Part shown: piece by piece, positions 2,990-49,560 of the stretch
Numbering within the stretch: position 1 is the stretch's first letter
How the letters are laid out: every line of letters starts with the position of its first letter
From: Intoshia linei
Taxonomy: Eukaryota > Animalia > Orthonectida
Reading direction: 5' to 3'
Length of the DNA stretch: 50,690 bases
NCBI GenBank assembly: GCA_001642005.1
Contig: LWCA01000119.1
Span: forward strand, 1-50,690
The notes under the pieces: generated by a model
What the model was told of the DNA's origin: nothing
The model's database searches: none
What the model saw: only the letters and a program-made list of their open reading frames with translations
Program-made: the position numbers and the translations under genes

Positions 2990-5900
2990 TAAATCTATAT
3001 CTAAGTGCTTGACATATTTCAGGTGAATTTACCTATATTGCAAAGGATTGTAATAAATATTAAAATGATAATAACAAAGTTGTATATTTTTAGTAGTCGT
3101 TGTAATTTTTATTTAAATTTTATTTAAAATGTTGTGAAAATTTAAAAATTGCGTAGCAATGAAAAAAATTCCGAAGGAATGAATTATATAGATTTTCACA
3201 CATATTTATTTATTGGAAATGTTCAATGCACATTTTTTTTAAATTGTAGAATCAATATTTACATTTTCAATTTTTATTTTAATCGAAATATTTGAAAAAT
3301 ATTGGTTGAATATATTAAAAGTATTTTTCACCCGGGAATGCGTAGATTTCTCGGGTTGAAATTTTGTTTATTATGAAATTAAATAATTATTTAAAATGTT
3401 TTATTAATTAAATTTAATTATAATTAACGGTCCGACAATTAAAAAAAAAAGATTATTCTGTTGTATATATTTGCATTCATACAAATTTATGCAATTTTGG
3501 TGTCTAAGGGTTAAAAAAATAATTGATACATTTGAGTCATTCAAGGTCAAAAACCCAATTATTCCAGATGATATAAATACCAGAAATTTCAACTATATAA
3601 ATCTACGCATTCCCGGTGGAAAATAACTTAATATATTGGAACTAATATTTTTCAAATGTTTGGATTAATTATGTAAATCAATGTAAAATTAAAACATTGT
3701 ACTTTATGACAATTTTAATCTTTTACTAAATAGATACTACAAAATATGACGAGATAATGGAAAAATTTCAGAAAATAGCTCCACGAGGTAATTTAATTTG
3801 GTAACCTAAACTAAACAATTTTTATTTATTTTGATATTTAATATAATTAGTGCCACGTTATATCTTAAAATTATAACAAATACACGTCAACTACGGGACT
3901 AAAAATGTTGCCATATTTTTTATTATTATTATCATAAAATTGAATGTCTATTTTTGTGTGATTGTTACCGTATATTTAAAAATTAACTGTCGTAGAATTT
4001 AAAAAAACACAATTTCAAATAAACTTTTTCGAAGGGGATGTTTACATCTATTTTTTAGTTTCACAATTTGAGTTATTCAGGGTTAAAAACCCAATTTGCT
4101 TTTTTGTTTAAAAATAAAATCAGCCCTACAATTACAAAAAACATGTGTTCTGGGACGCGCTTTAAATTCAATAACATTGTCGTAAATCTCAACCTAAGAA
4201 ATGTACAATTACAAGTTCAAAACCATAAATTACCTTTTGAAAATGAAAAATGTTATAAAACATCAATTGTGGGATAACACTAGTCAACAAAAATCGATAT
4301 TAAAATCTTTTTATTTCATATCATTATACATATGTGTAGTTTTTTCTTGGCATCATTATGTATATTATTATTTTATTGGTGTACGTCAGGTACCCGAGAT
4401 ACGGTGTAGCAAAAATAAGGTAATATAATGTATAAATGGATATATTAGCTTTGTTTTTTTACTTTTTGTTTAGCTATGACTGTCATATTGTTAAATATAT
4501 AATTTAAATGTTATCTAAAAAATAAAAAAAATTTTTAAACAGTTACCTGCAGTACAGACCTGAAATAAAATAAATTTGTTTAAATCAAAATCTTTCTTCA
4601 CGAATCCTATCTTGTATGAAAGAGAATTTAAAAGTACGATATAATTTATTTCACCGAAATGGTTTATGTTTACATCAATTAAAAACAACCCAAGTTCAAA
4701 AACCCAACTTCCCCTATTGTTTAAAAAATAATAAAACATACGTTCTGCGACGCATTTTAAAATCATTAACGTTGTCGTAAATCTCAGCCTTCGAAACGCA
4801 TACTTTCATGGTCAAAAATCCAAATTACTCTTTGTTTTAAAAATGAAAATGTCATAAAATTTTATAAAACAAATTGTCAGGTTGAATATTTACATTTTCA
4901 ATTTTTATTTTAATCGAAATATTTGAAAAATATTGGTTGAATATATTAAAAGTATTTTTCACCGGGATTGCGTAGATTTCTCGGGTTGAACTTTTGTATT
5001 TATATCAACTGGAATAAGCTCTATCAGAATAATCTTTTTTTTTTAATTTTCGCACCGTTAATTATTTCACATTTTTTATTTTAATAAAATATTTTGTAAA
5101 AAAAATATATGAATACCAAAATGCTTTTTTGACCCTGAAATCGTCACTTATTCGGATTGAAATTTTTTGTGTGTTAACAGGATACAAATGTACCACCTGT
5201 AATTTTTTTAATTCTAGGACTGTTTTCATAAAAAAAAAGTAATTTGTGGTTTTGGCCCTGAAGATATAATTTTTTTAAATTTAAAGTTATGATAATGTTT
5301 ATGATTTTAAAATCCGTATCAGCGTATATATTTTTTTAAATTCTCGAACTCGTTTGATTTTCAAAAAAAAGACAATTGGGATATATATTTTTTTAAATTC
5401 TCCAACTCGTTTGATTTTCAAAAAGAGGGACAATTTATTAGATTCTCCAACTCGTTTGATTTTCAAAAAAAATGAAAATTGGGGTTTTGGACCCATAAGA
5501 TGTGAGTTTGGTAGGTTGAAATTTATCATATTATCATCCGGAAAAAACTGTAATTGAAATGTGGACTTTATAAAATTCTAAGACTGGTAGTTATTTCAAT
5601 AAATTGGAACACTCATACAACTTTATAATAAAAAGTAAGGATAGTGATTGTCGCATTTCAAAACGGTTATTAAAATGTCTGTTTATTTATTTATTTGTTT
5701 TAATATATTTAAGAAAGTATGAGAATTCATGTTTTAAAAACTCTAAAGTTTTATTTATATTAAAATTTTTCAAGAGTGTTGTTTTATCGCAAATTTAATT
5801 TTCAGAAATTGAGTCCTTCAAGGATAAAAAACCCAATGGTCCTTTTTTTGAATTCAACCCCATTCATACAATTAAAATCTTACAATTTTCAAAAAATTTC

Positions 5901-6145
5901 AAATGCATTAATATTATGATAATTTTTATTTTCAAAATCTTATATCTTTACGGACAAAACCCCAAATTACCTTTTTTTGTAAAAATGAAAAAATTCGTAG
6001 AATTTTATACAAAAAAATTATGAGATAGTTTTAAATTCATAAGCATTATCATATTGGCAACATCAAAACAGATAATTTTCACTATGTTGATTTAAGATTT
6101 AATTTTTTGGAGATAAAATTAGAAGTCCTCCTCGGCAGAGCTAGC
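2990..6145. mobile_element. Cluster of fragments of a Helitron-like non-autonomous repeat family (both orientations)
   Basis: Blocks such as cccgggaatgcgtagatttctcgggttgaa, aaacgcataccttcatggtcaaaa and gtgttaacaggatacaa recur at ~9.8-10.1k, 12.7-14.2k, 21.4-22.1k, 41.4-42.2k and 49.7-50.4k. One copy ends ..ctcggcagagCTAG at ~6144. Boundaries are approximate. Confidence 0.6.
5335..5470. repeat. Three short tandem copies of aattctccaactcgtttgattttcaaaaa inside the repeat element
   Basis: The motif is seen at ~5339, ~5396 and ~5442. The homologous elements at ~13970 and ~49880 have a single copy. Confidence 0.75.
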
Positions 6146-6746
6146 TCCTGTTTTTACGTTGTACAAACCAGTCAAGTTTGTTATTTTGTATTGTATTTTA
6201 ATTGACTGCACCGCAATTCTTAAATTTAGTTAGTCATTGGAAATAAATCAATTTAGTCAAAAACTTATAACTGCGATCTTAAAACATGTTTTAAAATAAA
6301 TTGTTTTATTCGAGTGTATTTAAAAATGTATTACCATAATTGTTGTATACCGAGAGGCTCTTTAATAATAACCAATTTCACTGTTATGTACTTGGTATTT
6401 GGCAATCAGTTGTATGTAATTGTACTCTTTTTTTCAATTAAACGATAACACAAATAAATTCAATTTGATATACAGAGTAAATGATAAGGATATGTAAGTA
6501 AAAAATTACGTTTTATTAACCAACTAGGTTGACTGTTATGTACTTCAATTATAATTGAAGTACACAAGTACAAATTTGATTATGTATATTATTATACTAT
6601 ACATAATTTTTTTAAATTTTTGGATCGCGAAAATTTTTTATGTTTATAAGGGATCGCGAACACAAAAAGGTTGAAAACCACTGATGTATAGTATGTATTG
6701 CATACATTCGAAAAATTTAATTTGTAAATATTTTACATAAACGAAA

Positions 6747-8762
6747 CTATGGTTTGTAGTCTGGAGGTGGGTCGTATCGAGCCATATCTAATGGAGGAGG
6801 TGGAGCTATTTCGGCATTGGGTTTGTCTAAATTAACAATATAAACAAGCACAATAAGTGTAATAACTTTATTTGAAACAAACTAAAAATTGTGCAGATTT
6901 TGTAGCTGTAGTTCTTAATATGACTACCCAGATAAGAAAATTGTTGGTCCTTAACAAATTTTTGGTTTTAAAAAAATGACTGTAATTTAAAGTTTACTAG
7001 TTGAAGTAAAATGTGCATTACTAGAAGTAAAAACCTTAAGGGCAGTTCGAACCGTAGTCCACTAAATAAAATTATCTCAAAATTTTTTTGTGAAAAATTG
7101 AGATTAATCAAGCATATTCTGCAGTCCATATTTATAATTTCCAATTTTATCAATTCGTTTCCCACCTTAGGTGATTTCACATTTTATGCGATTTAAAAAA
7201 TTTACAATAAATGAATTTAATCATTTCCTTAACGGTTTGGTAGAATCTGTATTAAGTACTTGAAGTTAAGAAAATGATTGAATCAACTTTACTTTATTAT
7301 CAGGGTGGTCAAAAGCGCGGCCGCGAAATTGTTTACAATTGTTAATAATATATTTTGTAAAACAGGTAAATAATAAAAAATTTTAATAAATATTTGTGAT
7401 ATGTAAATAATCAGTTCAAGGGAGAAAAATGCTTTTTAAATTGGAGTAAGAGAAAAAAACTAAAAAAGGAAGGAATGATGAAATAATTGTGTAAAATTTT
7501 TTTAATGTTGCGACCAATTTGTAAAATGTATTCTGGCCCTCACTCGCCATGTTTGGACCACCCTGTTATAAATGATTGATGTCATAAATTACCTGTATCT
7601 TTAAAATTTGAAGAGTCCTGTAAAGCTAGAGAAGTATTAATATTTGATAGGGCTAGATTAACATTGTCAGGTGTAGTATGTGTAATTCTAGTATTTTTTA
7701 TTTTTCTTTTTTCAGTGCATTTGAGACGACGAATAATATATATACAGAATGAAATTAAAACTGTTGTTACAATAATAGCTGCCATAATTATAATTGCTCT
7801 AATCATGTATTCATCGTACCATTTTTTTCCTATTGATAAAAAAATTTAATGGGAATTAAAAAGTTCACCTTGTAATGGTGAATTACCTACAACTGGTTCG
7901 TAGTAACAAAAACACATGGTTAATAAAGTGGCTCGTATAGACTGAGTGTACGGAATGGTTCTGACGTAGGGTTTGAGTTCTCCAGAAAAAGAATTGAGAT
8001 TAAAGAGTTTAGCAGTGGCCCATGTAATATACTCTTCATGTACTTTAGTATATTTTATGGATTGGCACGCATTTCCAGTCCTAACCAGATAAAAAGGAAA
8101 CGAAATTGGTAAAATCATAGAACTGGTAGTGCCATCTTTTCTACAGCAAAAATTGTACACTGTATTTAAGCCATATTTACCATCCGGTAATACACCTAAT
8201 TGCAATTATATGTTTACAATGACTTGAAACCTTCAGCTGTTTGTTGATTACTATAAAGAGCAGCAGCGTCATCCCAGCGAATAGAACTGTCTAAAAATCC
8301 AATAGGACATTTTCCAGTGTACCTGAAGATACAATAGGAACCTAAAGAAGTTAGGTAAAATAAAAACTAATACAATGTAGTACCGAAAGGCCAGGTTTTG
8401 AAATTGGAAACGGGTTTATATTGAATTTTTGAACAGAATTTTAAATAGATGCTATTACTAGTCAGCGCACCGCCAAAATGATTCGGAGTAGTCCATTTAT
8501 TTTCGGGGTTAGTAATTTGCTTCCGTTGACCTAAAAGCATGATTAACAGCCAATAAAGCACATACCAGTGCGCCAAATGAAATTAGAATTGTTCGGACAT
8601 CCTGAAGCAGTCATCAATAAAGTATAATTACCGTCAGGCCATTCAGAGTCTAGATTTAATATAATCTTTATTTTAAATAAGAGCATTACCTTGTACATTT
8701 TCTCCAGAGCCAAATATTTTCATAGAAAACAAAAGGCATAAGATTAATGACGGTGACGTCAT
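6747..8762 (-). CDS. Type-I membrane protein: signal peptide, ApeC (apextrin C-terminal) domain, TM helix, cytoplasmic PPxY tail (~352 aa, 7 exons)
   Basis: Exons 8762-8690, 8649-8566, 8530-8384, 8341-8231, 8195-7869, 7829-7593, 6826-6747; all GT-AG and in frame. Translation: MTSPSLILCLLFSMKIFGSG..WPDGNYTLLMTASGCP..FCSK..WPFGSYCIF..CPIGF..IRWDD..GVLPDG..FCCRKDG..LP..PFYL..CQ..CYYEP (ApeC Cys/Trp pattern), then TM AIIIMAAIIVTTVLISFCIYII-RRLK, then tail ..PPPPLDMARYDPPPDYKP*. Confidence 0.85.
7301..7565. mobile_element. hAT-type MITE in the last intron of the ApeC gene
   Basis: Terminal inverted repeats cagggtggtc(c)aaa...tttggaccaccctg. Confidence 0.7.
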
Positions 8763-10836
8763 AAATAAAGAAATTTTCTAAAAGAAAAAGTTTTGCAAAG
8801 CAATCATGTAAACACAGATGGAAATATGCGTTGGTAATGGACAAAATTAAACTCAATAAAATATTGAATTCTACTTAGTCTATGTAACTATGTACTTATC
8901 ACTATAACGTAAAATGGAGAATTATGGGAACATTACGAGTTTCCTTTCAACGATAATGTTTATTTTAAACTTTCTCACGAAGTTTATTTAGATTTTACAG
9001 TTACGTGCATGCTTTATTGTTTTTATATATTTTTATAAGATTTCATTGTTTATGGTCTGTTATTAATAATTATAATTACAGTGCTGAGACTGACTTTTAA
9101 TTGTTTACTTGTATGATACTAAATGTATCTTATTACTTGTTTGCAAACTCGATTGTATATCTAAGATTTTGTGTCAATAATTATATAATTTCCGTTATAA
9201 ACATTAGTTTTCATTAGAATGTAATAATTATAATGTAAATTAAGGACCTGTCTAAATGATATTTTTGGTAGTATTAAAATATTTTTAAAATGTGTGACTA
9301 AGATAAAATTCAAACTGTTTGAATTACAAAAATGTAGAGGAATGTGCGTTTAAATGAAATGTAAACTTAAGTTTCAATCAAAAAATGAATATTTGCATAG
9401 TTTACGAATTTAAGGGACCGGTTAGTGCTTTTTGGAATCCTTGATCATGGTAGGTTCGTCTCTGACTACTAAACCCATAAAAGTGGACAATAGGGTATTA
9501 CAATAGGTGTGAATTTTAGTATTTTTTATGAAAATTTTATAGTCCAGGAACTGATAAAGTCGCGTATGACAGTTTGATTGTTACACGGAAAAAAATTAAT
9601 TTTGGAAAATAAGTGGTCTTGTGTTGATCGTCATGTTTGGTTAATCACTTTGTATGTTTAAAATTCAATTCTACCTCATTTATTATTATTTTTAGTGAAA
9701 ATTTTTATAAAATTGCCAGCTTTACTGTTATGTACTTTGTACAAACAACATTCTAGTTCTGCCAAGGGAGAACTTTTTTAATTCTACCAAAAAAATAAAT
9801 TCAATAATAATTAACGGAATCAGTTTATACTGGGTAATTTGTTGTTTTGACCATGAAGGTATGCGTTTCTGATGCTGAGATTAACGACAATGTTAATGAT
9901 TTTAAAACGCGTCCCAGAATGTATATTTTATTAAAATTTGGTGTTAATTTATTTTTTTAACAAAAGGGAAAATTGGGTTGTTGACGCTGAAGGACTCAAA
10001 TTCCGAAACTGAAAAATATATATAAACACGGTCTGGAAAAAACTGTTTAAAATTGAAATTTCGTTTTTTAAATTCTACGACTGTCAATTTTATAAATAAA
10101 AGGTAACAGACACAAAAACTGAGATTTTAAATTTTATATATGTAAACTTTACATTGTAAAGGATAAGAACTTTAAACATCGATAAAATACAAAGTAAATG
10201 AAGTAAAATTGAATTTAAAGATACAAAGTAAAGAACCAAACATGGTGATCAACTCAATAACACTCAAATCATATATAGAACATACCATGGTAACATTCCA
10301 TAAAATGAAGTTATATTTTAATTTTTGTTTGGGATTTTTAAAATGGAAAGCGCCTCCGCAAATTTTGATATAATTTAATTGTATTTTTTTTTATTGTCAT
10401 TTTTGATTAATTAATCAACTTTTTCCGAGCCTGGACTTAATTTTAAAAATTTTATCACACCCTAGTGGACAAGATTTAAATTTTTAACATAATTCATAAG
10501 TAAATGTATAATTAATTTGAAGAATATGTTTTTAAGTTTTTAAATTGAATAATAATAGTAAAAAATCGCTAATTTGTATTATTCCATAAACGGAAATAAA
10601 AATAATTCCAGATAACGTTCAAGTAAGTAATAAACTGAAGACGGAGGATTGATCAAAAAGATAAAATTTGTGAAAATGTGTTGAAAAAATTGCATAATGA
10701 ACTACAAAATGACAATACCTCAGTAACTTGCAGTAAATAAATAATATAAAGTTTAATTTATTTTTTATCAGACTTGAGAAGATAAATTAACAAAATTGGT
10801 AAATTATATATAAATTTAAAATGTATTTTAAGTTAA

Positions 10837-12366
10837 ATGAGTGAAAATTATGATTTGAATTCAATAGCAAGTAAGGTGACTGAAACGTTTACAAACACAA
10901 CAAAAAATGTGACTGAACATAAGGTAGATTTAGTTTCTCAACTATTTGCTTTCTCTGGCATAATATCATTGTCCCTCTTAACAATTTATGTGGGATCCAC
11001 TTTGTCTGCTATATATAGACGAAGTTTAATGAAAAGTAACTTTAAGGTAAACTTTTTAAATTTTAGTTTTAAATTTTAAATTTATTTTTAATTATAGGAT
11101 AAACAATATGACATTATAACCCGAAAAGATGCAGCATTGTTTCCTTTTATAGCGAGCTTTGTATTAGTGTCATTCTACGTTGTGTTCAAGGTTGAATATT
11201 ATTTTTTAATTTTAATTTTCATGTTAGTTTATGAATAAAGATGACGTGTCCAAGTTAATTCGATTGTATTTTGGTATATTTGGAATTTACAGCATTACAA
11301 AAGTTATAACGTAAGTATTTCACATTATACATGTATTTTTATTATTGATTAGACCACTTTTTGAAAAATTATTGTTTTTTATCAACGTTCGCAAATTTAA
11401 TTTATGTTTGACTGAATTTAAAGATAAGGAAAATAAAAAGAATTACTTTTCTCACGATTTCAATACTCATTTCATTATAACTGTCATATTTTCGATTGTT
11501 AACAGTGCAATTTACATATTTTATACGGTAAATAATTTATTTTATTTTTAAATTTTATTTAGAATTGGATTTCAAATAATATCTTTGCTGTTTGTTTTTG
11601 TATTAATGCTTTAGAATTCTTGTTTATCAATAAATTCCTCAATGGTGTATTGTTAATGTCGGGATTGTTTTTTTATGATATATACTGGGTAATTTGTATT
11701 CGAAATTTATTGTTTACTTTTGTATTTACTATTTAGGTGTTTTATACAGAAGTTATGGTCGTTGTCGGCAAATCTCTTCAAGTACCAATCAAAAGTATTG
11801 TACTATTTTCATTTTAATAATTTTCATATAGTTATGATTCCTCAGAATATTAACTTTTCTGGTAACGTAACGGGAGAATTAAAGCATTCCATGCTTGGAT
11901 TAGGAGATATTGTTATTCCTGGACTCATGATTGCTTTTTTGTGTCGTTTTGATTCTCAGTATTTCTTTGTATTCAGAGATAATTAAGCCCATTTAGTCAC
12001 AACAGAAAATATAGACCTTACTTTTTAATTTCATTTTTAACCTATTTTTTGGGTCTGGTTGCTGCATTTTTAGCTATGGTCATGTACAAGCATGCACAGG
12101 TTGGTTTATTAACATAATTGTTAACATTTTGTTTAGCCAGCGTTGTTATATCTTGTACCATGTGGACTTTTAACTCCACTTTTCACTGCTTTGGCTAGAG
12201 GCGAACTTAAACAGCTTTTAGAGTAATACTTTTCATTTTATTTTATTTAGTTTTTAGTTATGTTGATAAACCAAATGATATGGGAAATAATTCAAATGAT
12301 GATTCCAACGAACATGATAAAGTACGCAATGATGCCATACTCGGCAAATCTGAAAAGGTTGAATAA
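10837..12366 (+). CDS. HM13: Signal peptide peptidase (peptidase A22B, GxGD intramembrane aspartyl protease), ~10 exons
   Basis: The spliced translation contains IYVGS, ITRKDAALFPFIASFVLVSFY, NWISNN, GLFFYDIYW (YD, ~11674), TEVMVVV, SMLGLGDIVIPG (GLGD, ~11897), RFD and KHAQ|PALLYLVP (PAL). Short GT-AG introns; stop at 12364-12366. Confidence 0.93.
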
Positions 12367-13385
12367 AAATATTGTTCCACTATTACAAATTATCTAAATG
12401 TTATGTTTAAATTACAATTTAAATTATTTATCTCAATATTTTTCATAATCAATATTATCTCAAATTCTCTTGGCACGCAAAAATGCTTGTTTTCATAATA
12501 TACACAATTATCATTATGACAAGTTTCCGTGTTATAACTACCTAGCCTTTTTTACCACAATAAACAACATTCCTAGTCGAACGTTTTATATTTTCCAACA
12601 CTTTACACTCACAAAACTTGACATGTAAATAACACTTCAGTAAAATTACCAATAAATAGTATAAAATCTAGTTAATTTTTACTGATAATAAAATTGAATG
12701 TCTGTTACTGTATATTTAAAAAGGAACAGTAGTATAATTTAAAAAAACCTAATTTCTAATACAGTTTTTCCTAGAACGTGTTTATATCTATTTTTCGAAT
12801 TTGAGTCCTTATGCGTCAAAAACCAAATTTTCTCTTTTGCTTATAAAATAAATCAACATCAAAATTTAATAAAACATAAATTCTAGGACTCAATGTAAAA
12901 TCATTAACATTGTCGTAAATATTATCCTTAGAAACGCACACCTTCATGGTCAAAACCACAAATTCCACTTTTTTTAAAAATGAAACATGTCACAAAAATT
13001 TTATAAAACAAATTCTGGGATATTTTTCAAAATCATCAGCATTATCTTAATTGGCAACCTCAAAAAAATGCATTTTCATGATGACAACCAAAAGATTAAA
13101 AATGAAAATGGTTCTAGAATTTTAAAAAAAATTACAGTTGATACAGCTATATCCAGTTAACACACACAAAAAATTTCAATCTGACAAAGTGACGTCTTCA
13201 CGATCAAAAAAACACTTTAGTATTTATTTTTTTTTATTTAGAAACTATTTTATTATAACAACAAATTTTAAATAATCTATTCACTTTGATGCTGAATTAA
13301 TTACATCTGCATGTGGCTATCTGTATTAAATTAACAACTATTGTATGCATTACATTTGTTCCGTTATTAACATTAACGTAAAATA

Positions 13386-15106: not shown

Positions 15107-15466
15107 CTAGATAAACTCTGTCAACTCTGAAAAATCTTCATAATCAGCATTAACGTTTCTTTTGTGAGGAATTGTTCGAAATCTATAACTCCTTTTCCCA
15201 TTAGCTAAAATGTAATGTAATTTGAAATGAAATATATACCTGAAAGACAAAAGTGTACTCTCCAAATTCCTTGACATTTTTCTAATCGGTTCTTTAAAAA
15301 TTTAATAAAATAATAAATTACGATTCAAATATGAATCCATATCAGAATCACGTATAATAACTCCTAAAAAAGTTTTAATATACAATTAAAAAGTACATTA
15401 AAGTATATTACCTTTTATTGCTCGTTCAAAGAAAAAAACAAAAAGAAAAATTAAAAGAACGTTCAT
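15107..15466 (-). CDS. Excitatory peptide (EP/GGNG; CCHamide-related) neuropeptide precursor, 78 aa, 4 exons
   Basis: Exons 15466-15412, 15363-15322, 15281-15240, 15204-15107 (GT-AG introns of 48, 40, 35 nt) give MNVLLIFLFVFFFERAIKG-VIIRDSDMDSYLNQ-KCQGIWRVHFCLSAN-GKR-SYRFRTIPH-KR-NVNADYEDFSELTEFI*. It has a hydrophobic signal, a KC-x-G-x-W-x-x-H-x-C-xxx-N-G-KR motif matching annelid/mollusc EP (KCSGxWAIHACxGGN-amide), an amidation Gly and a dibasic site. Confidence 0.85.
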
Positions 15467-15837
15467 GTGCATTGATTTAAAAAATTATAGTTATTTAAGC
15501 AAAAAATAAGAGATTTAATCTATATAAATTATTTGTTTATCAATCAATAACAAATTTATATGAAATTATACTAAACGAATACATGTGTGGTTTATTTTAA
15601 TCAATATTTAAATTATCAGTTTTAATTGAATTTGTCTTAAATGAAACCTAAAAGTACATTTATAAATAATAATAATAATATATTAGCAATTTATTATCTA
15701 TAAATATTCGTAATGCTAATAAACAAAATAACAAATATTAATATTTTTTAATTAAACTTTTAATATGACATTACAGTGTAAAGATTGCACTGTAATTGTT
15801 ATTTTATGTAACTTGGATAATTAAAATAATTTATAAA

Positions 15838-16455
15838 ATGACTGACAATGAAATATTGAATACATATTATTCCATTTTGGTTAAAACAGGATTAAAAAAT
15901 GGTTTACATCCAGAAAATACTGCATTATATTACAAATTATTTAAAGAAATTGTGAAATTTATCGACAGTCGAGATTTAAATGAAAGTTTGAGTAATTTAA
16001 TTAATATATTAAATCATCCTCAAGATGTGACACTTGCTTTATTTGATATTTGTCAAAAATTTACCAAATTTGAAATGGATTGTGTTATTAATACTATTAA
16101 TAATCAAGTTTTAAAAAATTATAAACTTTTGAAACGAGTCATTCATATCAGTAAAAACCATCAAATAAGTCAGAATAAGGTTTCCCAAAGTATTGAGGTT
16201 AATGTACCCACTTCATATGATGAAATATTTGTTAATCCTATAAATGTGAGCCATTTTGAGCATAATGTTATTAAACAAAATCGAATTGATAAAATAAAAA
16301 TGAAATACTACAAGATTAAAGAAGATGTGTCAAACAAATTTTCTATTGAATTTTCAAAACTTAAAAGTGATTTTGGAAATCATTTGGAGATTAACAAATT
16401 TTATCCTCAAAACATGTACAATATAAAGGTAAATTTAATAGTAGTGATTGTGTAA
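15838..16455 (+). CDS. Uncharacterised ~206-aa protein, possibly flagellar C1a-32 (CLAMP)/C8orf74-like
   Basis: Long open frame in AT-rich DNA, with ATG at 15838. The pattern YY..LV..G...E....Y.L....L....F...E...VI....N.VLKNYKLLKRV resembles the C1a-32 domain from memory; not verified. There may be a further short exon to ~16510. Confidence 0.55.
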   Translation: MTDNEILNTYYSILVKTGLKNGLHPENTALYYKLFKEIVKFIDSRDLNESLSNLINILNHPQDVTLALFDICQKFTKFEMDCVINTINNQVLKNYKLLKRVIHISKNHQISQNKVSQSIEVNVPTSYDEIFVNPINVSHFEHNVIKQNRIDKIKMKYYKIKEDVSNKFSIEFSKLKSDFGNHLEINKFYPQNMYNIKVNLIVVIV

Positions 16456-27501: not shown

Positions 27502-30500
27502 TTAAAGTTTTAAATTTTTTTTATTGTGACTCTTTTTGAATTTTGGTTTTTGCTTTAAATTAAATTTACACTCCCATTGCTTAATATTTTTAGAATATAA
27601 TTCGATATTTAATCTTTTCCATATAAATCGTCCATATTTATCATTGGATATTTTTGAAGCTCGTTTAGATAATTTATTGGCTATTGATTTAAAAGTTTCA
27701 TATGTACAATCTTCAAATAATTTATCCATTATACGACTGCCACAAGGGCTTGTTGAAAGTTGAACAGATAATGTCTACATTTAATTTAATAATAAAAAAT
27801 ATTTGGAAACAAACCATTAATTTTTCATGAATACTCAATAAAATTTCCTTATTTGACGATTTCAATAAAACGTCAATTACTCTACTAGCCAAACCATTGT
27901 TGCACCATTTAACAAATAAATCGTTGCGTTCATTTATCAAAACGAGTGAAATTTTTTCACATTCTAGGTTTATTAAATTTTGTAAAATTATAGACCCATA
28001 ATAAGTTGCTTGTCGATTTTCCAGTATATCAGACTTGAAATTTTCTTTCAATTGATTTGGTCGTTTCATAGACAAAATATAATACAATAAATCCGAATTT
28101 ACTTCTTTACATTCGAATTCGTCCATTATTTTCTAAATTTTTTAAATATAACAAATCATAGTTTCTTTCGAACAAGTGTACTAGTATATACAGCATTATT
28201 AACTATACATTTACTATTTCTGTGGATTTCTTTGATTATAACAGTACATTTCAGTGACTGATGCCTTACCGGTGATTCTGTATATCGAAAATTTAACACG
28301 TAATTTAACTTTTAAGTCTAAATCATAAACCAGAGATCGGCAACCAGTGGCCCGCGGACCAAAAGTGGCAAACAGAATAATTTTGGTGACCCTTTGAGTA
28401 AATATGTAAATTATTTATTCTTCAACTTTTAAACACCGTCTAAAAAATTGGCTCATTATAATCATTTTAATACTGAATTTTCAAATCTTCCGGGATTTTA
28501 TTTTGTTAAATATACTAGAACCGTTTCTCTTTAATTAACATTGAAATATATAGTGATTAAATTTTCAAAAACAGGGTCCACGGAATTTTTTGATATAAAT
28601 AAGTGGCCCACCAGATGCAAAAGCTTACCCGGTCATAAATGAGCGCATATTAACATAATAAAAAGTTATACATTAAAACAGGGTAGTTCAAATACATGAA
28701 GAGTGAGGGTCAAAAAACAAATTTTACAAATTTCGCGGGTCCAACAATAAAAAATATAGTCCAAAAAGTTACAATTATTATTGTAAAAAACAAAAAGTAA
28801 GAAGATGAGAAAATTGGTACAGAAACACCTAATTATTTCTAAAAAATTTAAATTAATGCTAAGTAATGTGGTAATTATGGCATTTCTGTAAATCAATGCT
28901 TTAAAAAATATATTATTATACAATTTCGAGGGCCACGTTTTATACCACCCTGCATTAAAATCACCTCGGATCTTTTATGATTCACTAGACTATTTTATCT
29001 GAATTTTTAATTTCGATTACAATAGTAAATCTCAATGATTCATTACCATCACTAATCAAGGGTTAACCTGTATTTTTATAGATAACCTGAATAAATAAAT
29101 TAGTTAAATCCAATTCTTTTAAATCAAACAATTTTTGAGACATTGTAGATAAAAGTACAAAATTTTTATTGTCTAAAATAACTGAAATTTCAATTAATTT
29201 TAAAATTCTTTTAGTCTAAATTTTTAAATAATTTTTGATTAATTTGCAAAAATAACTTGTTTGGCATTTGCATATAAAATAAATCCCTTCAAAATATTAT
29301 GCATCAATTTATCCGATTGAAATACTTCAATTTCGTGTTTTATATAACTTTTATAAAACTTTGATTTCATTTTGTCAGTCATAATTTTGAACAAATTTTC
29401 AATTAAAATGGAACCAACTCGATCTGACATAATTTTTGAAAAACTAATTAATATTTTAAAAATTTGTAATAATATTTTTCAAATTTTAAGATAATACCCA
29501 ATTTTTCCAGATGAAATTGATTCTATAAAAGATTTCAACAATGTTATATTATTTTGAGTTTTAAACGAATTTGATAATAGAACGGTTTGAATTACTGGGT
29601 TGGCTACAGGGTTTATACAAAGTTCTAAAAAATGATAAATACACTATGAATATAATAGTACCGTCAATATTGGGTAAATTAAAGAGTCGAGCCGTAAACA
29701 CGTTTATTATCGATTCACTTTCCGAACTACATAAATTTGATGTTTTTTTTGTGGTTACATCTAGTCTTTTAAATGTATTCAAATTAATAATAAATTATAT
29801 ATTTAATTAGTACAATTGTAATTACTCTTTTTATATTTAATGGTATCTTTTCCGTGTAATAAATCTCGATTATAGTTAGAATTTGTTAAAATTTCGATAA
29901 ATGCACGAATAACGTGACTCATATAACAATGTAATACATTTTCTTCAATATCTTGCATAAAACTGGTGAATATTGTAATTATTAGATTTGTCAGTTCACT
30001 ATCGGCTAAACTAAACGTATAAAAAACAATCCAAGATTTTAATAATTAAAATTTAACATGAAAGGTGAAAAATATAACATAAATCTATTAAAACAAAAAA
30101 GTGTATTTTATGGGTTTCGATCATTTGGTCAATTTTCAAACAATTCCATGAGTATATATTTATCGCGTATTAACAATCACGGAATTGAGACTATCGAACT
30201 GAAAATGGGCGAATAACCCCATAAAATAAATTGCAATATAAACTACATGTATCATTGTCATCCATAGTTGTAACAACTCTTTTTATTAATGTTTGAGCAA
30301 CATGACTAGAGAACCTATGAGAAGAAAAGGATATCCAATCTTCTTTTACACAATTAATTAAGGAAATTACATGTTTTCTTGAAAAGTTGTAACAATTTAT
30401 AAAATTTTCAACAATTCTACTTATTGCTTGACTTTTACATATTAATAATAATTCTGTCGATAATTGTTCCGTTACATTATCAACAAATAAAGCCTCCAAC

Positions 30501-30580
30501 TCTTCTGATTCAATCTTTTCTTTTATTTGATGGTAGTAAGAAATTGTATTTTCAGGTAATTTATCACGTTGTTCCTTCAT
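27502..30580 (-). CDS. NOP9: Nucleolar protein 9 (PUF-like repeat rRNA-processing factor), multi-exon
   Basis: Starts MKEQRDKLPENTISYY..LFVDNV..SQAISRIVE. Repeated PUF-like motifs follow: HRFSSHVAQT, CYMSHVIR, DRVGSILIE, YYGSIILQ, NGLASRVID, NPCGSRIMD, DKYGRFIWKRLNIELY, then a basic C-terminus. Confidence 0.88.
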
Positions 30581-31153
30581 TTTCAAAATATAGTTATAAT
30601 TATTCGAAAATAAAAATGCTGCTATAGATATTTGAGCGATAAATAAACTATTCATTATTCAATGAGGTATCTCATCCTATCGCGAAATTAAAATCTCTCT
30701 TGTACAGTACAGTAGTAAAGCTCGTAAAAAAGTTTATTAATTAAAAAAATAATATAAACATACATACATATTTATGTTATTATTCTATATGCCCTAAAAT
30801 TTTTCAAAATAAATTAACAAATGTTTTTATGCTTTGCCTGTTTTCAAATTTGTATATGGTGAACTATTGAATAAAATGTATTGAGTTACATAGGAATCGT
30901 GTAATTATATGACGAACTAGATAATTTGTGAAATCACACTTGGAACAGAGTAGTTCGTTAAGTCTTAATTTATTTTTTTAAATAACTAATTCAAAAAAAA
31001 TAAATACAACGTAAACGCTTTTTTTATAAAAAATTGTGCCAATACCATTTGTTATGAAAATATCCGATTTACAGAGATTACTGTGCTATACTTAGTAGAG
31101 GGTTGACTGTATATGAAAAAATATGAACTTATTAACAAAATGATAGCCTAGTT

Positions 31154-43100: not shown

Positions 43101-46100
43101 GTCAGCAGGACAACTTCCCTGAACTCTTATTAAACCTAAGTTGACATTATAGTTGTTTTCATAGAGGTGCACATTAACGTATTTTCGATTCCTAAAACTA
43201 GTCTATTTATCAAGGGATATACTAAAACGTTTACCATCTTAAACTGAAATTTCCATTTTCTCAATTAACATTGATACTATTGATTTGAAATATGTATTTA
43301 ACATATGTAATATGTGACTAGGTTGTTTCGGCAAACCATAGGATAATTTTTTAAATGCCTCTCTTATAAATTCACTTTTAGTTATTGCCGCCATTGAAAA
43401 TTCATCATTACACACTAACTCAGCTACCAATTCCTCCCTGGTAGAAGACTCTTAGAAACAAAAAGAACAATAAAATTTGAATTGAAAGTTCTACCAATTT
43501 GAAATTTAAAATATGAAATGTAAATGTTAATTTTATTGGTATTTATCATTGGAAATTATTTTTTTACATAATTCACTATTATTTTCCAAATGTTTGTAAA
43601 AATCAATAAACTCTCTTTACAATTGTTCTATTTCGGAATTGAAGATTTAGCAAAATTAATTAACAGACGTAAAATGTGTTTATTTTAGAATGAACAATGT
43701 TCATTTTACTTACAATAGTTACAAGTATATTACATCTCCCGCCTTTTGCTAAATTTTTCACATTGCCTCGCCAAATGGTATATAAAACCGTATCGATGAC
43801 ACCTGCTACGCCTATCTTTAATATCGCAATATCTTGATATATGTCCAAAATCACCACATATAAAGAATTTGAATCGATTCTCCCGCATTGTAGATAATTG
43901 TCGATCTTCATCTTGATCTATACGCCTCGCCGACATTAATCTATCCGCCAATTTTATCTTTTTCGAATTTGAAGCCAAAATTTGATTATGTCAATATGTA
44001 AACGTAGCATACGTAGTCGTCGTCGTCTATGTTCAATTTACCAACACTATACCCATGATGAATTTGATATAATAATTCCTTTTGTATGGATTTTGGTACA
44101 ATAAATAACAATTTACCTTCTCGCCTATATGTCAACATGCTATTATGCGACAAGCCTCGTTCGTAACGTCCAATATTGATTATTGATTAGTTGACTACGT
44201 CTATTGCCTTTTAACCAATTAATTATTTGTTGTCCATCCGAATCTTTTGATTGTGCATCTTGAATTTTTAATTCATCTCTCGCCATTATAATAATCTGAA
44301 TGTTTTCTCTTGAAAGAACGTCCGCCGAACCATTCAAGCGTCCAGGACGATATTTTATTTCATAATCGTATGATTCCAATATTTGAATCCAACGCCATTT
44401 TATTTCCGACAATTTTGCCGACTGTCGAAACGCCACTAGTGGGTTAAGATCTGTCACAACTGTACATTTGCGGCCGTATAAATATTTGTGAAATTTTTTA
44501 ACCGCCCATACTACTGCTAATAATTCACGATCCACTACACCATAATTTTTCTGCGCATTATTAAAACTTTTATTAGCATGCATAACCACCCTTTCGCCTT
44601 GAAACAATGTAGCCCCCATGCCTGAATTTGAGGCATCTGTTTCCAAAATAAATGGCACATCCCAATCTACATGATCAATAAATGTATACTTAAACATTAC
44701 CTCCTTTAATTGACCCATCGCCTTGTCACATTCAACTGTCCAATTAAAACATCGCCCTTTCCTCGTTAACTTATTCAATGGAGCACATAAATCTGAGAAA
44801 TGGGGCAAAAATCGCCTATAGTAACTACAGAAACTAATAAAAGATATTACGTTTTCAACAGTTGTAGGTTTTGGCCATTCCTCAACTTTTTTTAATTTTT
44901 CCGGATCTGTTCTTACGTTATTTGTATTAATTACGTGACCTAATTACGTCAATTTTTTAGCGCCAACATAAAATTTCGCCGAGTTCACCGTTAAGCCAAA
45001 TTTTCGTAATCTAGACAATACATTTCTCAAGTGCCCTACATGTTCCGCCATAGTTCCTGAAATTACAATATCGTCCAAATACGCGACTAATATGATGATA
45101 TGAACAATGTTCATTTTACTTACAATAATTACAAGTATATTACAACAATTATAATTATTTTGGCATAATTAAAAAATAATTAATTTTATATTAATTAATA
45201 TATTGGAAGTGATCTAAATTAAACGATATAAAGTGTGTTTTTATAAAATATAAAATATAAATTTATTAAAACTTCACTTATTTAAGAAAGTGAAAAATTA
45301 CAAGTAAAATATTGACTAAAATTATCTATGGTATTTATGAGTACTTATTTAGTTATACTTAGTATTTATTTACTTATACTTATTTTAAATATCAAAAATA
45401 AGTACTTTTGTTAAAATTAATACTTATGGACACACTATTTTAAGCCAAAAATATTTTTTGCAATCATAGATATGTAATTTTGGCTTTACATTTAACTCCA
45501 AATAAACTAAAATTGAAGTAATCGAACATGACTAAATCGAGATATCACTGTAATAACAAACATAAATTAAATACAGGTATGTCTCATTTTTTTTTGGGAA
45601 ATCGTATAAATCCCGGGAATTTTGTTCCGGTTTTTTTTCCGGCACAATCACTACTCGTGGGTAAATACCCACAGGTTGGGAATCACTGGATTAAAGTTTA
45701 ATAAGCAATATATAGAGGTCCAATTTTAAAAAATGTTTTATAGGGGCCTATATTTCCATCTGACAACCTACTGCGGGCTCTCCACGGTTTGATGCGGTAT
45801 AATAATACATTTTAAAATATTTTATTCAAAAAATTTTTCAAAAGGTGGTAATGAAGGAAAGGTTGAAGACGATTGTTATAATCTAAAAATGAGACGTAAT
45901 AAAATGATTTTACTATTTTCGAATACTTATCAGTTTTCACACCATAAAAATTAATTTTATGGAATGCAAAGGTGCACGTTTTTAATTTAATCTATTATAT
46001 TAGACATTCTCAACCCTTTTTCTTGATAGACCCTACGATTGTATTGAAAAAACCTGTGGATTCCCCATAATAAAATACACCATTACATCTATTTCTTATA

Positions 46101-48113
46101 TAAAATTTAATATGTGACACACATTGTGTGTTTTAATATAATATATAACCAATATTATAATATTCTATCTTAAATAGTTAATATAAAAATAAAAACAATT
46201 CACTTCAATTTAGTCTTTGTTAATTAAAATTTATTATAATAAAATGTGAAAATAATTTAGTTTTTGTTGGAAAATGTATATTAAATTAGAAATAATTACT
46301 AGAATTAAGGAAATATAATTTTTCACTTTATTTTATTCTGTAAATAATGTATCTATAAAATTTTGCATGAATCCCAAAAAACTTATGTGGATCCATTGAG
46401 AATTGTTGTGTTATATAATATTTTTTGAATATTTTTCATGTTAAAAAAAGCAAATTATCTTGTCTGTTTTTTCTGATTACAGTGAAAACTCCTTATAAGC
46501 ACACTTTATATAATCACATCTATATAAAGTTTTATTTTGTTATTTTTTGTATTATTATTTATTATATATTATATTTATTAAATTTTATTAATGATGGGAT
46601 TATTTATATCGTTATTTTGTAAAGATTGTACGTCGTACAATATAGAATCTATAGTGTATTCTATGAAAATTAATGTTTTCATATTAAATTTTAGGTGGAT
46701 ATGACTGGAAACAGTATTTTTGAATTTCTATGCCCGGATGATCAATATATGATTGTAAACGTTTTAAATCAAACTCCATTTTTATACCCACGTGGAATAA
46801 ACGATCAGACAATCCTACCGGATGAAATGAAAATCCAAATAGATTCCAGAAAAAGATCTCTGTACAAAACTGAAAAAAAGCCATTCAACTTATGTTCGAG
46901 TATTTACAAAAAGCAAATATTTGTGAGACTTCGATGTGTTTTAGCAAAAAGAAATGCTTCAATTACTGTCGGTGGTTATAAGGTTTATTTTCCATAAAAT
47001 TGGTGTATGTAAATTTGATAGGTGATTAGAATGTTAATATCGACAGTTATATCCGAAGAATCTGAAAATTTTGTAATTTTTGCCCAATCAATACCACAAA
47101 CAATATCAACTGAAATTACTGTTAAAAGTCACATGTTTGTTGTTAGATTGGATAACGTTTTTAACATTACATTTGCAGATAGCAAGTTTGATTATTGTAT
47201 ACAAAATTATATCATTTCTAGTTTAGTAAAAATGACTGGCTACGATCAACGTGAATTGATGCACAAATCATTGTACGATGTTTGTCATATTTGTGATGTT
47301 GAAATTTTAAGAGAAGCCCACGAAATTTGTATTTAATTTATTACTAAAAATAATTTTATTTTAGTGATTCAGACAGGGCAAACTGTTTCACGTTATTACC
47401 GTTTCATTAATAAACGAGGTGGATATATTTGGGTAATGAGTTTAATATCTTTAATGGTAAATATTCGTGCCAATACCACACAACTCTATGTTTGTTTAAA
47501 TTACATTTTGAGTGAAGTCGAATCACCAAATGTAAAATTCAATATTCTCAAAAAAAAGAAAGAAATACCGGATATTTTTACCATATCTCACAAAAAATAT
47601 AAATATAGAAATGAAGAATATTCACCAATTTGTCTAGATAAATATTCTGGTTTCAATAAACCATTACAAAATTCTCATTTTCCAAATTATCAAAATTCTC
47701 AGAATAACATGTATAAAGAATTTTATCAAATGCCACTGAATCATTACACGCATTACCCATTAATTGGTTTAGATTATTTACAACAAAATAATTTAGACAG
47801 GGCTACACATTCTTCAGATACCATTGATACATATATCCCTGCAGATGTTTCCATTCAAAATACTTATTTTTTTAATCAAAATGTAAACAATTCATGCAAA
47901 TACCTTAAAAACGAACAAGAATCCTTTCACAATTGTTGTTGTCAATATACAAAACAAAAGAATCACATTCCCGACGCTATTCATTATGACACCAAAACTA
48001 TTTTATCTTATCCAAATTCAAACTGCAATATTAAACATTCTTATATGAATTCATCAGTGAAAAGTAAAAATTTACCGTCCATATACGGAACTTCCAACGT
48101 CTCAATAAATTGA
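37103..48113 (+). CDS. sim: Single-minded bHLH-PAS transcription factor, 8 exons
   Basis: Exons ~37103-37317, 37952-38133, 40215-40258, 40294-40383, 46695-46982, 47022-47185, 47222-47328, 47365-48113. bHLH: [30 protein letters not shown]: [35 protein letters not shown]-diagnostic [22 protein letters not shown]: [16 protein letters not shown]. The first exon is less certain. Confidence 0.93.
38816..39268. mobile_element. hAT-type MITE in a sim intron
   Basis: TIRs cagagatgggaa/ttcccacttctg; TSD gtttacag/gtttatag; internal 29-bp-type repeats. Confidence 0.8.
41414..42215 (+). mobile_element. Helitron-like repeat copy in sim intron 4
   Basis: Starts A|TCctttacttatattaaattgaatgtctgtgtgtgt; internal blocks are shared with the copies at 12.7k, 21.4k and 49.7k. 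Confidence 0.65.
41697..41764. mobile_element. 68-bp micro-MITE inserted in the Helitron-like copy
   Basis: TIRs cagtagcgaatcta/tagatcggccactg; 8-bp TSD cctttatg/ccttcatg. The empty site aaacgcacaccttcatggtcaaaacc is seen in a paralogous copy at ~12935. Confidence 0.85.
42766..45653 (-). mobile_element. Decayed hAT transposon with transposase remnant (~42985-43440)
   Basis: TIRs tagtgattgtg/cacaatcacta; TSD cttgtggg/ctcgtggg. The remnant reads [57 protein letters not shown]. Confidence 0.88.
43624..45144 (-). mobile_element. Internally deleted Ty3/Gypsy LTR retrotransposon
   Basis: 5-bp TSD acaat (43619-43623, 45145-45149). The 3' LTR is 43624-43734 (TG..CA, 111 bp), preceded by PPT aaaaggcgggaga. 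A 45-bp 5' LTR stub lies at 45100-45144. RT reads [20 protein letters not shown]; RNase H reads [21 protein letters not shown]. Confidence 0.93.
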
Positions 48114-48186
48114 TTTATTATGTACATTTTTATAAAATTAATATAATTATCAGTCATTTTTAAATGCACCATTTTTATCTTAATGT

Positions 48187-49560
<1,374 letters not shown>

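Follow-up and report, generated by a model that had tools for sequence, protein, structure and literature searches.

The minus strand of the window, by which we mean the whole stretch of 50,690 nucleotides analysed, very probably carries a single-copy EP/GGNG precursor gene of the orthonectid Intoshia linei, orthologous to the arthropod CCHamides, whose product would be processed to an Asn-amide neuropeptide. This gene is already known. We compared the translation of each exon with the sequence printed in Additional file 1 of a survey of EP/CCHamide precursors that included Intoshia linei, BioProject PRJNA316116 (Thiel et al. 2019, Front Zool 16:28; PMC6617912), and found the precursor to be identical, residue for residue, to GenBank OAF70707.1, as printed there under Ilin.OAF70707.1. 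The gene is annotated and has been assigned to its family in print since 2019, and the claim of an initial annotation that it was hidden and probably unannotated does not stand. With the gene model in GenBank and the family assignment published, the locus carries little weight as a discovery.

Thiel et al. treated the Intoshia sequence as the EP ortholog of orthonectids and included it in their EP/CCHamide alignment (Fig. 1b; Additional file 1); their main text names Intoshia in the Methods only and does not discuss the sequence further (PMC6617912). The membership in the EP/GGNG/CCHamide family that had been proposed from the DNA agrees with this independent published assignment of the identical protein.

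Gene structure and coding signal

The gene model, which is based on the genome annotation and on family resemblance, consists of four micro-exons on the minus strand (15466-15412, 15363-15322, 15281-15240 and 15204-15107; 55, 42, 42 and 98 nt). The product has 78 aa when read from the ATG at 15466 and 80 aa when read from an in-frame ATG at 15472, two codons further 5', which gives the N-terminus MHMNVLL… and is the start of the published model. The features of the locus are as follows.

15521..15526, minus strand: TATATA, a TATA-like element 54 nt 5' of the ATG at 15472 (consensus match only, in AT-rich DNA)
15412..15472, minus strand: coding exon 1, MHMNVLLIFLFVFFFERAIK plus the first base of the Gly codon; the predicted signal peptide lies within it
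15364..15411, minus strand: intron 1, 48 nt, GTAATA..TTTTAG, phase 1, GC 0.15
15322..15363, minus strand: coding exon 2, 42 nt, (G)VIIRDSDMDSYLN(Q), an acidic N-terminal extension without a dibasic site
15282..15321, minus strand: intron 2, 40 nt, GTAATT..GATTAG, phase 1, with a second AG upstream at 15293-15292
15240..15281, minus strand: coding exon 3, 42 nt, (Q)KCQGIWRVHFCLS(A), carrying the Cys-x8-Cys ring
15247..15276, minus strand: ring motif C-Q-G-I-W-R-V-H-F-C, the sole genome match to C-x-G-x-W-x2-H-x-C
15205..15239, minus strand: intron 3, 35 nt, GTATAT..TTTTAG, phase 1, GC 0.17
15107..15204, minus strand: coding exon 4, 98 nt, (A)NGKRSYRFRTIPHKRNVNADYEDFSELTEFI, then the stop TAG at 15109-15107
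15191..15202, minus strand: N-G-K-R, the predicted amidated Asn, the Gly amide donor and the Lys-Arg dibasic cleavage site (convention of the Fig. 1 legend, PMC6617912)
14971..14976, minus strand: AATAAA, a possible polyadenylation signal 131 nt 3' of the stop (consensus match only)

Translated one by one, exons 1 to 4 give MNVLLIFLFVFFFERAIK, VIIRDSDMDSYLN, KCQGIWRVHFCLS and NGKRSYRFRTIPHKRNVNADYEDFSELTEFI, the last followed by the stop. Joined, they read MNVLL…ERAIK-G-VIIRDSDMDSYLN-Q-KCQGIWRVHFCLS-A-NGKRSYRFRTIPHKR…TEFI and the stop, all three junctions being in phase 1 and yielding the split codons G, Q and A. Both the exon translations and the GT-AG introns bear out the 78-aa prepropeptide and the 55/42/42/98-nt exons proposed from the letters. 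The model behind OAF70707.1 starts at the ATG at 15472 and has splice junctions and an acceptor choice identical to ours (PMC6617912). Intron lengths of 35-48 nt fit the species, since Intoshia introns have a median of 57 bp and most are longer than 30 bp (PMC6543705).

The choice of acceptor matters at intron 2, which has two AGs at its end, separated by 10 nt. The frame is preserved with the downstream AG alone, at 15283-15282; an exon spliced to the upstream AG, at 15293-15292, would be 10 nt longer and out of frame, reaching a stop at the exon 3/4 junction. The second AG is thus needed, as had been argued for position 15282. By the usual acceptor rule the upstream AG would be preferred, yet it destroys the frame, and this speaks against the gene model.

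We consider it most improbable that gene prediction in AT-rich DNA produced the model by chance, with the locus being non-coding or encoding nothing but an unspliced 56-aa ORF (15277-15107). In the 41.6-Mb genome (41,603,068 bases in 3,520 contigs), this locus is the one place where the ring motif C-x-G-x-W-x2-H-x-C is found, but the motif taken alone is at chance level, because a reversed-pattern control also has one genome match and composition predicts 0.27 occurrences per genome. A chance origin would also sit with the outcome of the exon-by-exon family scan, in which exons 1 and 4 match no Pfam family; the scan covered these two exons, since exons 2 and 3, with 13 whole codons each, are below its minimum of 20 residues. 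Moreover, the mechanical 56-aa ORF at 15107-15277 (minus strand; MSRNLESTLLSF…), which is the only trace of the gene in the list of open reading frames, runs through intron 3 into exon 4. This ORF, however, has no signal peptide and loses the ring. The Lys before the ring and the N-G-K-R after it are correctly placed, with a joint probability of ~4e-7 that multiplies the expectation for the motif, and they come with a hydrophobic N-terminus of 12 residues, three in-phase GT-AG introns and identities (WRVH, KCQG and GKRS) to brachiopod and nemertean EPs. The GC content is 0.26-0.33 in the exons, 0.15-0.17 in the introns and 0.18-0.22 in the flanks, and this roughly twofold contrast between exons and introns is what real exons are expected to show in such AT-rich DNA. 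Taken together, the ring, its flanking residues, the hydrophobic N-terminus and the three GT-AG introns in phase go far beyond what chance would give. The locus overlaps with no Rfam family and with no repeat or hairpin that is meaningful.

Several other features lie in the window. A 219-aa open frame without a Pfam match (15796-16455, plus strand) lies ~320 nt from the EP gene, on its upstream side and divergently oriented. On the minus strand, an open frame at 7846-8205 matches the apextrin C-terminal domain (ApeC, E 3e-19) and is part of an ApeC gene at 6747-8762, and two open frames within 27722-30655 match the C-terminal and N-terminal parts of the profile of a NOP9-like PUF repeat domain; these two are probably exons of one NOP9-type gene. 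A retroelement relic with reverse transcriptase RNase H-like domains (E 1.5e-28) occupies 44143-44808 (minus strand). Within 46695-49273 there are open frames with weak PAS-domain matches (47022-48113, plus strand), and a frame with a carboxylesterase fold (E 2.5e-18) is found at 48473-49273 on the minus strand.

The peptide within the EP/CCHamide family

Members of the EP/CCHamide family share two Cys, an amidated C-terminus and a single peptide placed right behind the signal peptide, and further traits are a ring that holds an aromatic residue and, in many members, a His, and a stretch with GG or G/A that links the second Cys to the amidated residue (PMC6617912). In the Intoshia precursor an uncharged hydrophobic run, VLLIFLFVFFF, follows MHMN, and a signal peptide is predicted: Thiel et al., using SignalP 4.1 and Signal-3L, marked its cut after …ERAIKG and marked the amidation site as well (PMC6617912). 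Exon 3 (KCQGIWRVHFCLS) carries two Cys with eight residues between them, as in annelids, molluscs, nemerteans and Lingula. Within this ring, Trp stands at position 4 and His at position 7, which are their positions in annelid, mollusc and nemertean EPs. Exon 4 begins with (A)N-G-K-R-S, and the GKRS, a predicted amidation site, is common to almost all members. The peptide is present in a single copy, the ring motif being found once in the genome. All the elements that the initial annotation had listed, namely the C-x8-C ring with its G, W and H, the N-G-K-R end and the replacement of GGN by SAN, are present in the exon translations.

Two features of the peptide count against reading the locus as an EP gene. 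Firstly, the peptide does not lie directly behind the signal peptide, as 14 residues without a dibasic site precede the K-C. Direct placement is typical and not strict, because exceptions are named in the tardigrade Milnesium and the leech Hirudo nipponia (PMC6617912). Secondly, the tail, C-L-S-A-N, has an Ala but no Gly on the way from the second Cys to the residue to be amidated; every other sequence in Additional file 1 has a Gly at this place. The Intoshia sequence was still counted as an EP ortholog by the authors (PMC6617912).

Like the trochozoan EP/GGNG precursors, that of Intoshia is short and carries the peptide once, towards the N-terminus, with a Lys before the first Cys, a C-x8-C ring with Gly 2, Trp 4 and His 7, and an Asn followed by G-K-R-S. 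It differs in the 14-residue acidic extension VIIRDSDMDSYLNQ that runs from the predicted signal cut to the K-C, and in L-S-A-N, with no Gly after the ring, where the others have (A/W/G)-(G/A)-G-N. In the ring, R-V stands at positions 5-6 and F at position 8, in place of A-I and A, and with 80 aa the precursor is the shortest of the published set. The extension, the tail and the shortness can all be seen in the sequence as published.

Comparison with Additional file 1 put a brachiopod and a nemertean nearest. The Lingula (brachiopod) peptide, NKCKGPWRVHGCFGGN-amide, is identical to that of Intoshia at 9 of 16 positions, WRVH included, and Tubulanus (nemertean), with GKCQGEWFRHSCLAGN and GKCQGEWFRHSCLAGNS-amide, has KCQG and CL-x-x-N in common with it; for Platynereis, KCSGQWAIHACAGGN-amide, identity is 7 of 15. 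The peptide had also been put forward as a taxonomic marker. It does point to trochozoan affinity in general, but not to annelid affinity specifically, since the same ring type is found in molluscs, nemerteans and brachiopods.

The ecdysozoan CCHamides, such as Drosophila CCHa1 (SCLEYGHSCWGAH-amide) and CCHa2 (GCQAYGHVCYGGH-amide), form an orthologous family by receptor phylogeny (PMC6617912). Like the Intoshia peptide, they follow the signal peptide as one copy and have two Cys that enclose an aromatic residue and a His, and their end is amidated, as is predicted for Intoshia. Their ring, however, is C-x6-C with an [FY]-G-H core, and they end in His-, Leu-, Met- or Phe-amide, whereas the Intoshia peptide has an eight-residue ring and a predicted Asn-amide. 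Deuterostome GRP, neuromedin B (NMB) and endothelin are related through their receptors, a relationship drawn from receptor orthology only (PMC6617912). As is predicted for Intoshia, GRP and NMB precursors carry a single N-terminal amidated peptide and the endothelins are disulfide-bridged, but in sequence these deuterostome peptides have no similarity to the Intoshia peptide.

Processing and the search for a receptor

By analogy with the family, the hydrophobic N-terminus would direct the precursor into the secretory pathway, where the signal peptide would be cut after …ERAIKG and the two cysteines would pair to close an eight-residue disulfide ring. Cleavage after G-K-R by a subtilisin-like proprotein convertase may follow, with a carboxypeptidase removing the K and R and an amidating enzyme consuming the Gly to leave a C-terminal Asn-amide. 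We expect the 29-mer VIIRDSDMDSYLNQKCQGIWRVHFCLSAN-amide, or else a shorter peptide ending in the same KC…SAN-amide core, to be released and to signal as a neuropeptide through a rhodopsin-type GPCR.

Thiel et al. predicted the 29-mer in full as the product, and they noted that the Lys preceding the first Cys was not seen to be cleaved in mass spectrometry of other spiralians (PMC6617912). The 14 acidic residues before the peptide had been described as a spacer; their number and their lack of a dibasic site are as described, but their standing as a separate piece conflicts with the predicted 29-mer. Removal of this stretch, and a second peptide, SYRFRTIPH, would be conjecture, because there is no dibasic site and no cleavage at the Lys was seen by mass spectrometry in spiralians. 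Release of SYRFRTIPH as a second peptide is possible but unsupported.

Candidates for all of these enzymes are encoded in the Intoshia genome. The P_proprotein domain of subtilisin-like proprotein convertases is found at three loci and M14 carboxypeptidase at several, while copper monooxygenase is found at two, C1376 and C3181. The gene on C3181 (~4650-7600, plus strand) is divergent: two collinear exons match Cu2_monoox_C positions 86-122 and 122-142 (E 2.8e-4 and 4.4e-4), and the next exon resembles an NHL six-bladed propeller (protein atlas, score 0.90; all of the 10 best matches are NHL). The segments of this gene are the following.

L067:3673-3831: C3181 gene, first segment
L067:4489-4770: C3181 gene, second segment
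L067:4866-5003: C3181 gene, third segment

Because Cu2_monoox_C followed by NHL is the order of PHM-PAL, this gene is a candidate for a bifunctional PHM-PAL amidating enzyme, which we take as a lead and not as proof. The other gene, on C1376 (~7600-12500, plus strand; L062), is a better-conserved copper monooxygenase with both PF01082 and PF03712. It is probably not the amidating enzyme, its only solved-structure match being a weak one to dopamine beta-hydroxylase (E 0.058). A DOMON domain had no match anywhere in the genome, in a search that returned no match of any kind.

In other trochozoans the EP receptor is an ortholog of the CCHamide, bombesin and endothelin receptors (PMC6617912). The rhodopsin-type GPCR family PF00001 has 59 matches in the Intoshia genome, which fall into ~42 loci and about ten sequence clusters; the published count is about 32 rhodopsin-family GPCR genes, with specificity unassigned (PMC6543705). 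Our receptor searches were forward and motif-based. No EP/CCHamide/bombesin-type receptor was recognisable among the ~42 loci, and this, too, counts against the reading as an EP gene. It is a weak negative, because Intoshia proteins are very divergent and three clusters are unclassified.

When nine GPCR representatives were compared with solved structures, the best matches were to galanin, KiSS-1/galanin, bradykinin B1, PrRP/NPY, opioid or TRH/GPR139 receptors, or to nothing. A bombesin or endothelin receptor was the best match for none of the nine, three of the runs having used thresholds that were too strict and left their clusters unclassified. Cluster B, with five paralogs the best-conserved peptide-receptor family, is galanin-like, its best match being a galanin receptor at 86.9 bits against 68.8 bits for the neuromedin-B receptor. 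A word-index protein search with a cluster-B receptor returned two Intoshia proteins only. One GPCR gene, on another contig of the assembly than the EP gene, is 100% identical to the NCBI protein 'G-protein coupled receptor, partial [Intoshia linei]'. An exhaustive search with the best cluster-B receptor returned 10,552 relatives; the sole informative name among the best ten was 'galanin receptor type 1-like', and none of the best 150 of the 10,552 carried an EP-receptor signature. Cluster C, looked up in the protein atlas, fell among generic, chemosensory or GPR139-like clusters.

The trimmed receptor alignment of Thiel et al. (PMC6617912) provided five short motifs as signatures of the EP/CCHamide/bombesin/endothelin clade. 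No Intoshia GPCR locus had more than one of the five, and the TM7 signature N-S-C-x-N-P-x-A/T-L-Y had no genome match at one mismatch or fewer. A search for the motif NPxALY found nothing. Thiel et al. scanned Intoshia data, yet none of the sequences in their receptor files comes from this species (PMC6617912).

The five paralogous peptide-type GPCRs, on C1106, C754, C2422, C2646 and C3209 (L004, L005, L012, L032 and L022), are 36-77% identical. They form the largest well-conserved peptide-receptor group found, with galanin receptors as the nearest named relatives, and in the GPCR on C1106 the DRY motif reads DKL.

These results bear on an alternative in which a genuine, secreted precursor yields an orphan ligand, or one put to a new use, after this reduced parasite lost the canonical EP receptor; the peptide would either use another GPCR or be itself on the way to loss. 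Such a history would account for the degenerate C-terminus (SAN) and for the unprocessed N-terminal extension. The receptor data lean the same way: none of the nine cluster representatives has a bombesin or endothelin receptor as its best match, the best-conserved peptide-receptor family, with its five paralogs, is galanin-like, the clade signatures fail to accumulate at any GPCR locus while that of TM7 is absent genome-wide, and Intoshia has no entry in the published receptor files (PMC6617912). We nevertheless regard this alternative as unlikely. Protein evolution in Intoshia is very fast, and for several GPCR clusters there was no match to work with. In the precursor itself the open frame, the predicted signal peptide, both Cys, the W, H and N and the G-K-R are all intact, which argues for ongoing selection.

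Implications

On the preferred reading, that of an EP/GGNG precursor gene, the locus illustrates that the raw sequence alone sufficed to arrive at the correct micro-exon neuropeptide gene, including the right acceptor AG of two. It is improbable that an intact though atypical EP ligand has been kept while its canonical receptor was lost or changed beyond recognition, with signalling passing through a different GPCR, for example one of the five expanded galanin-like receptors. If true, this would represent a re-pairing of ligand and receptor during extreme genome reduction.
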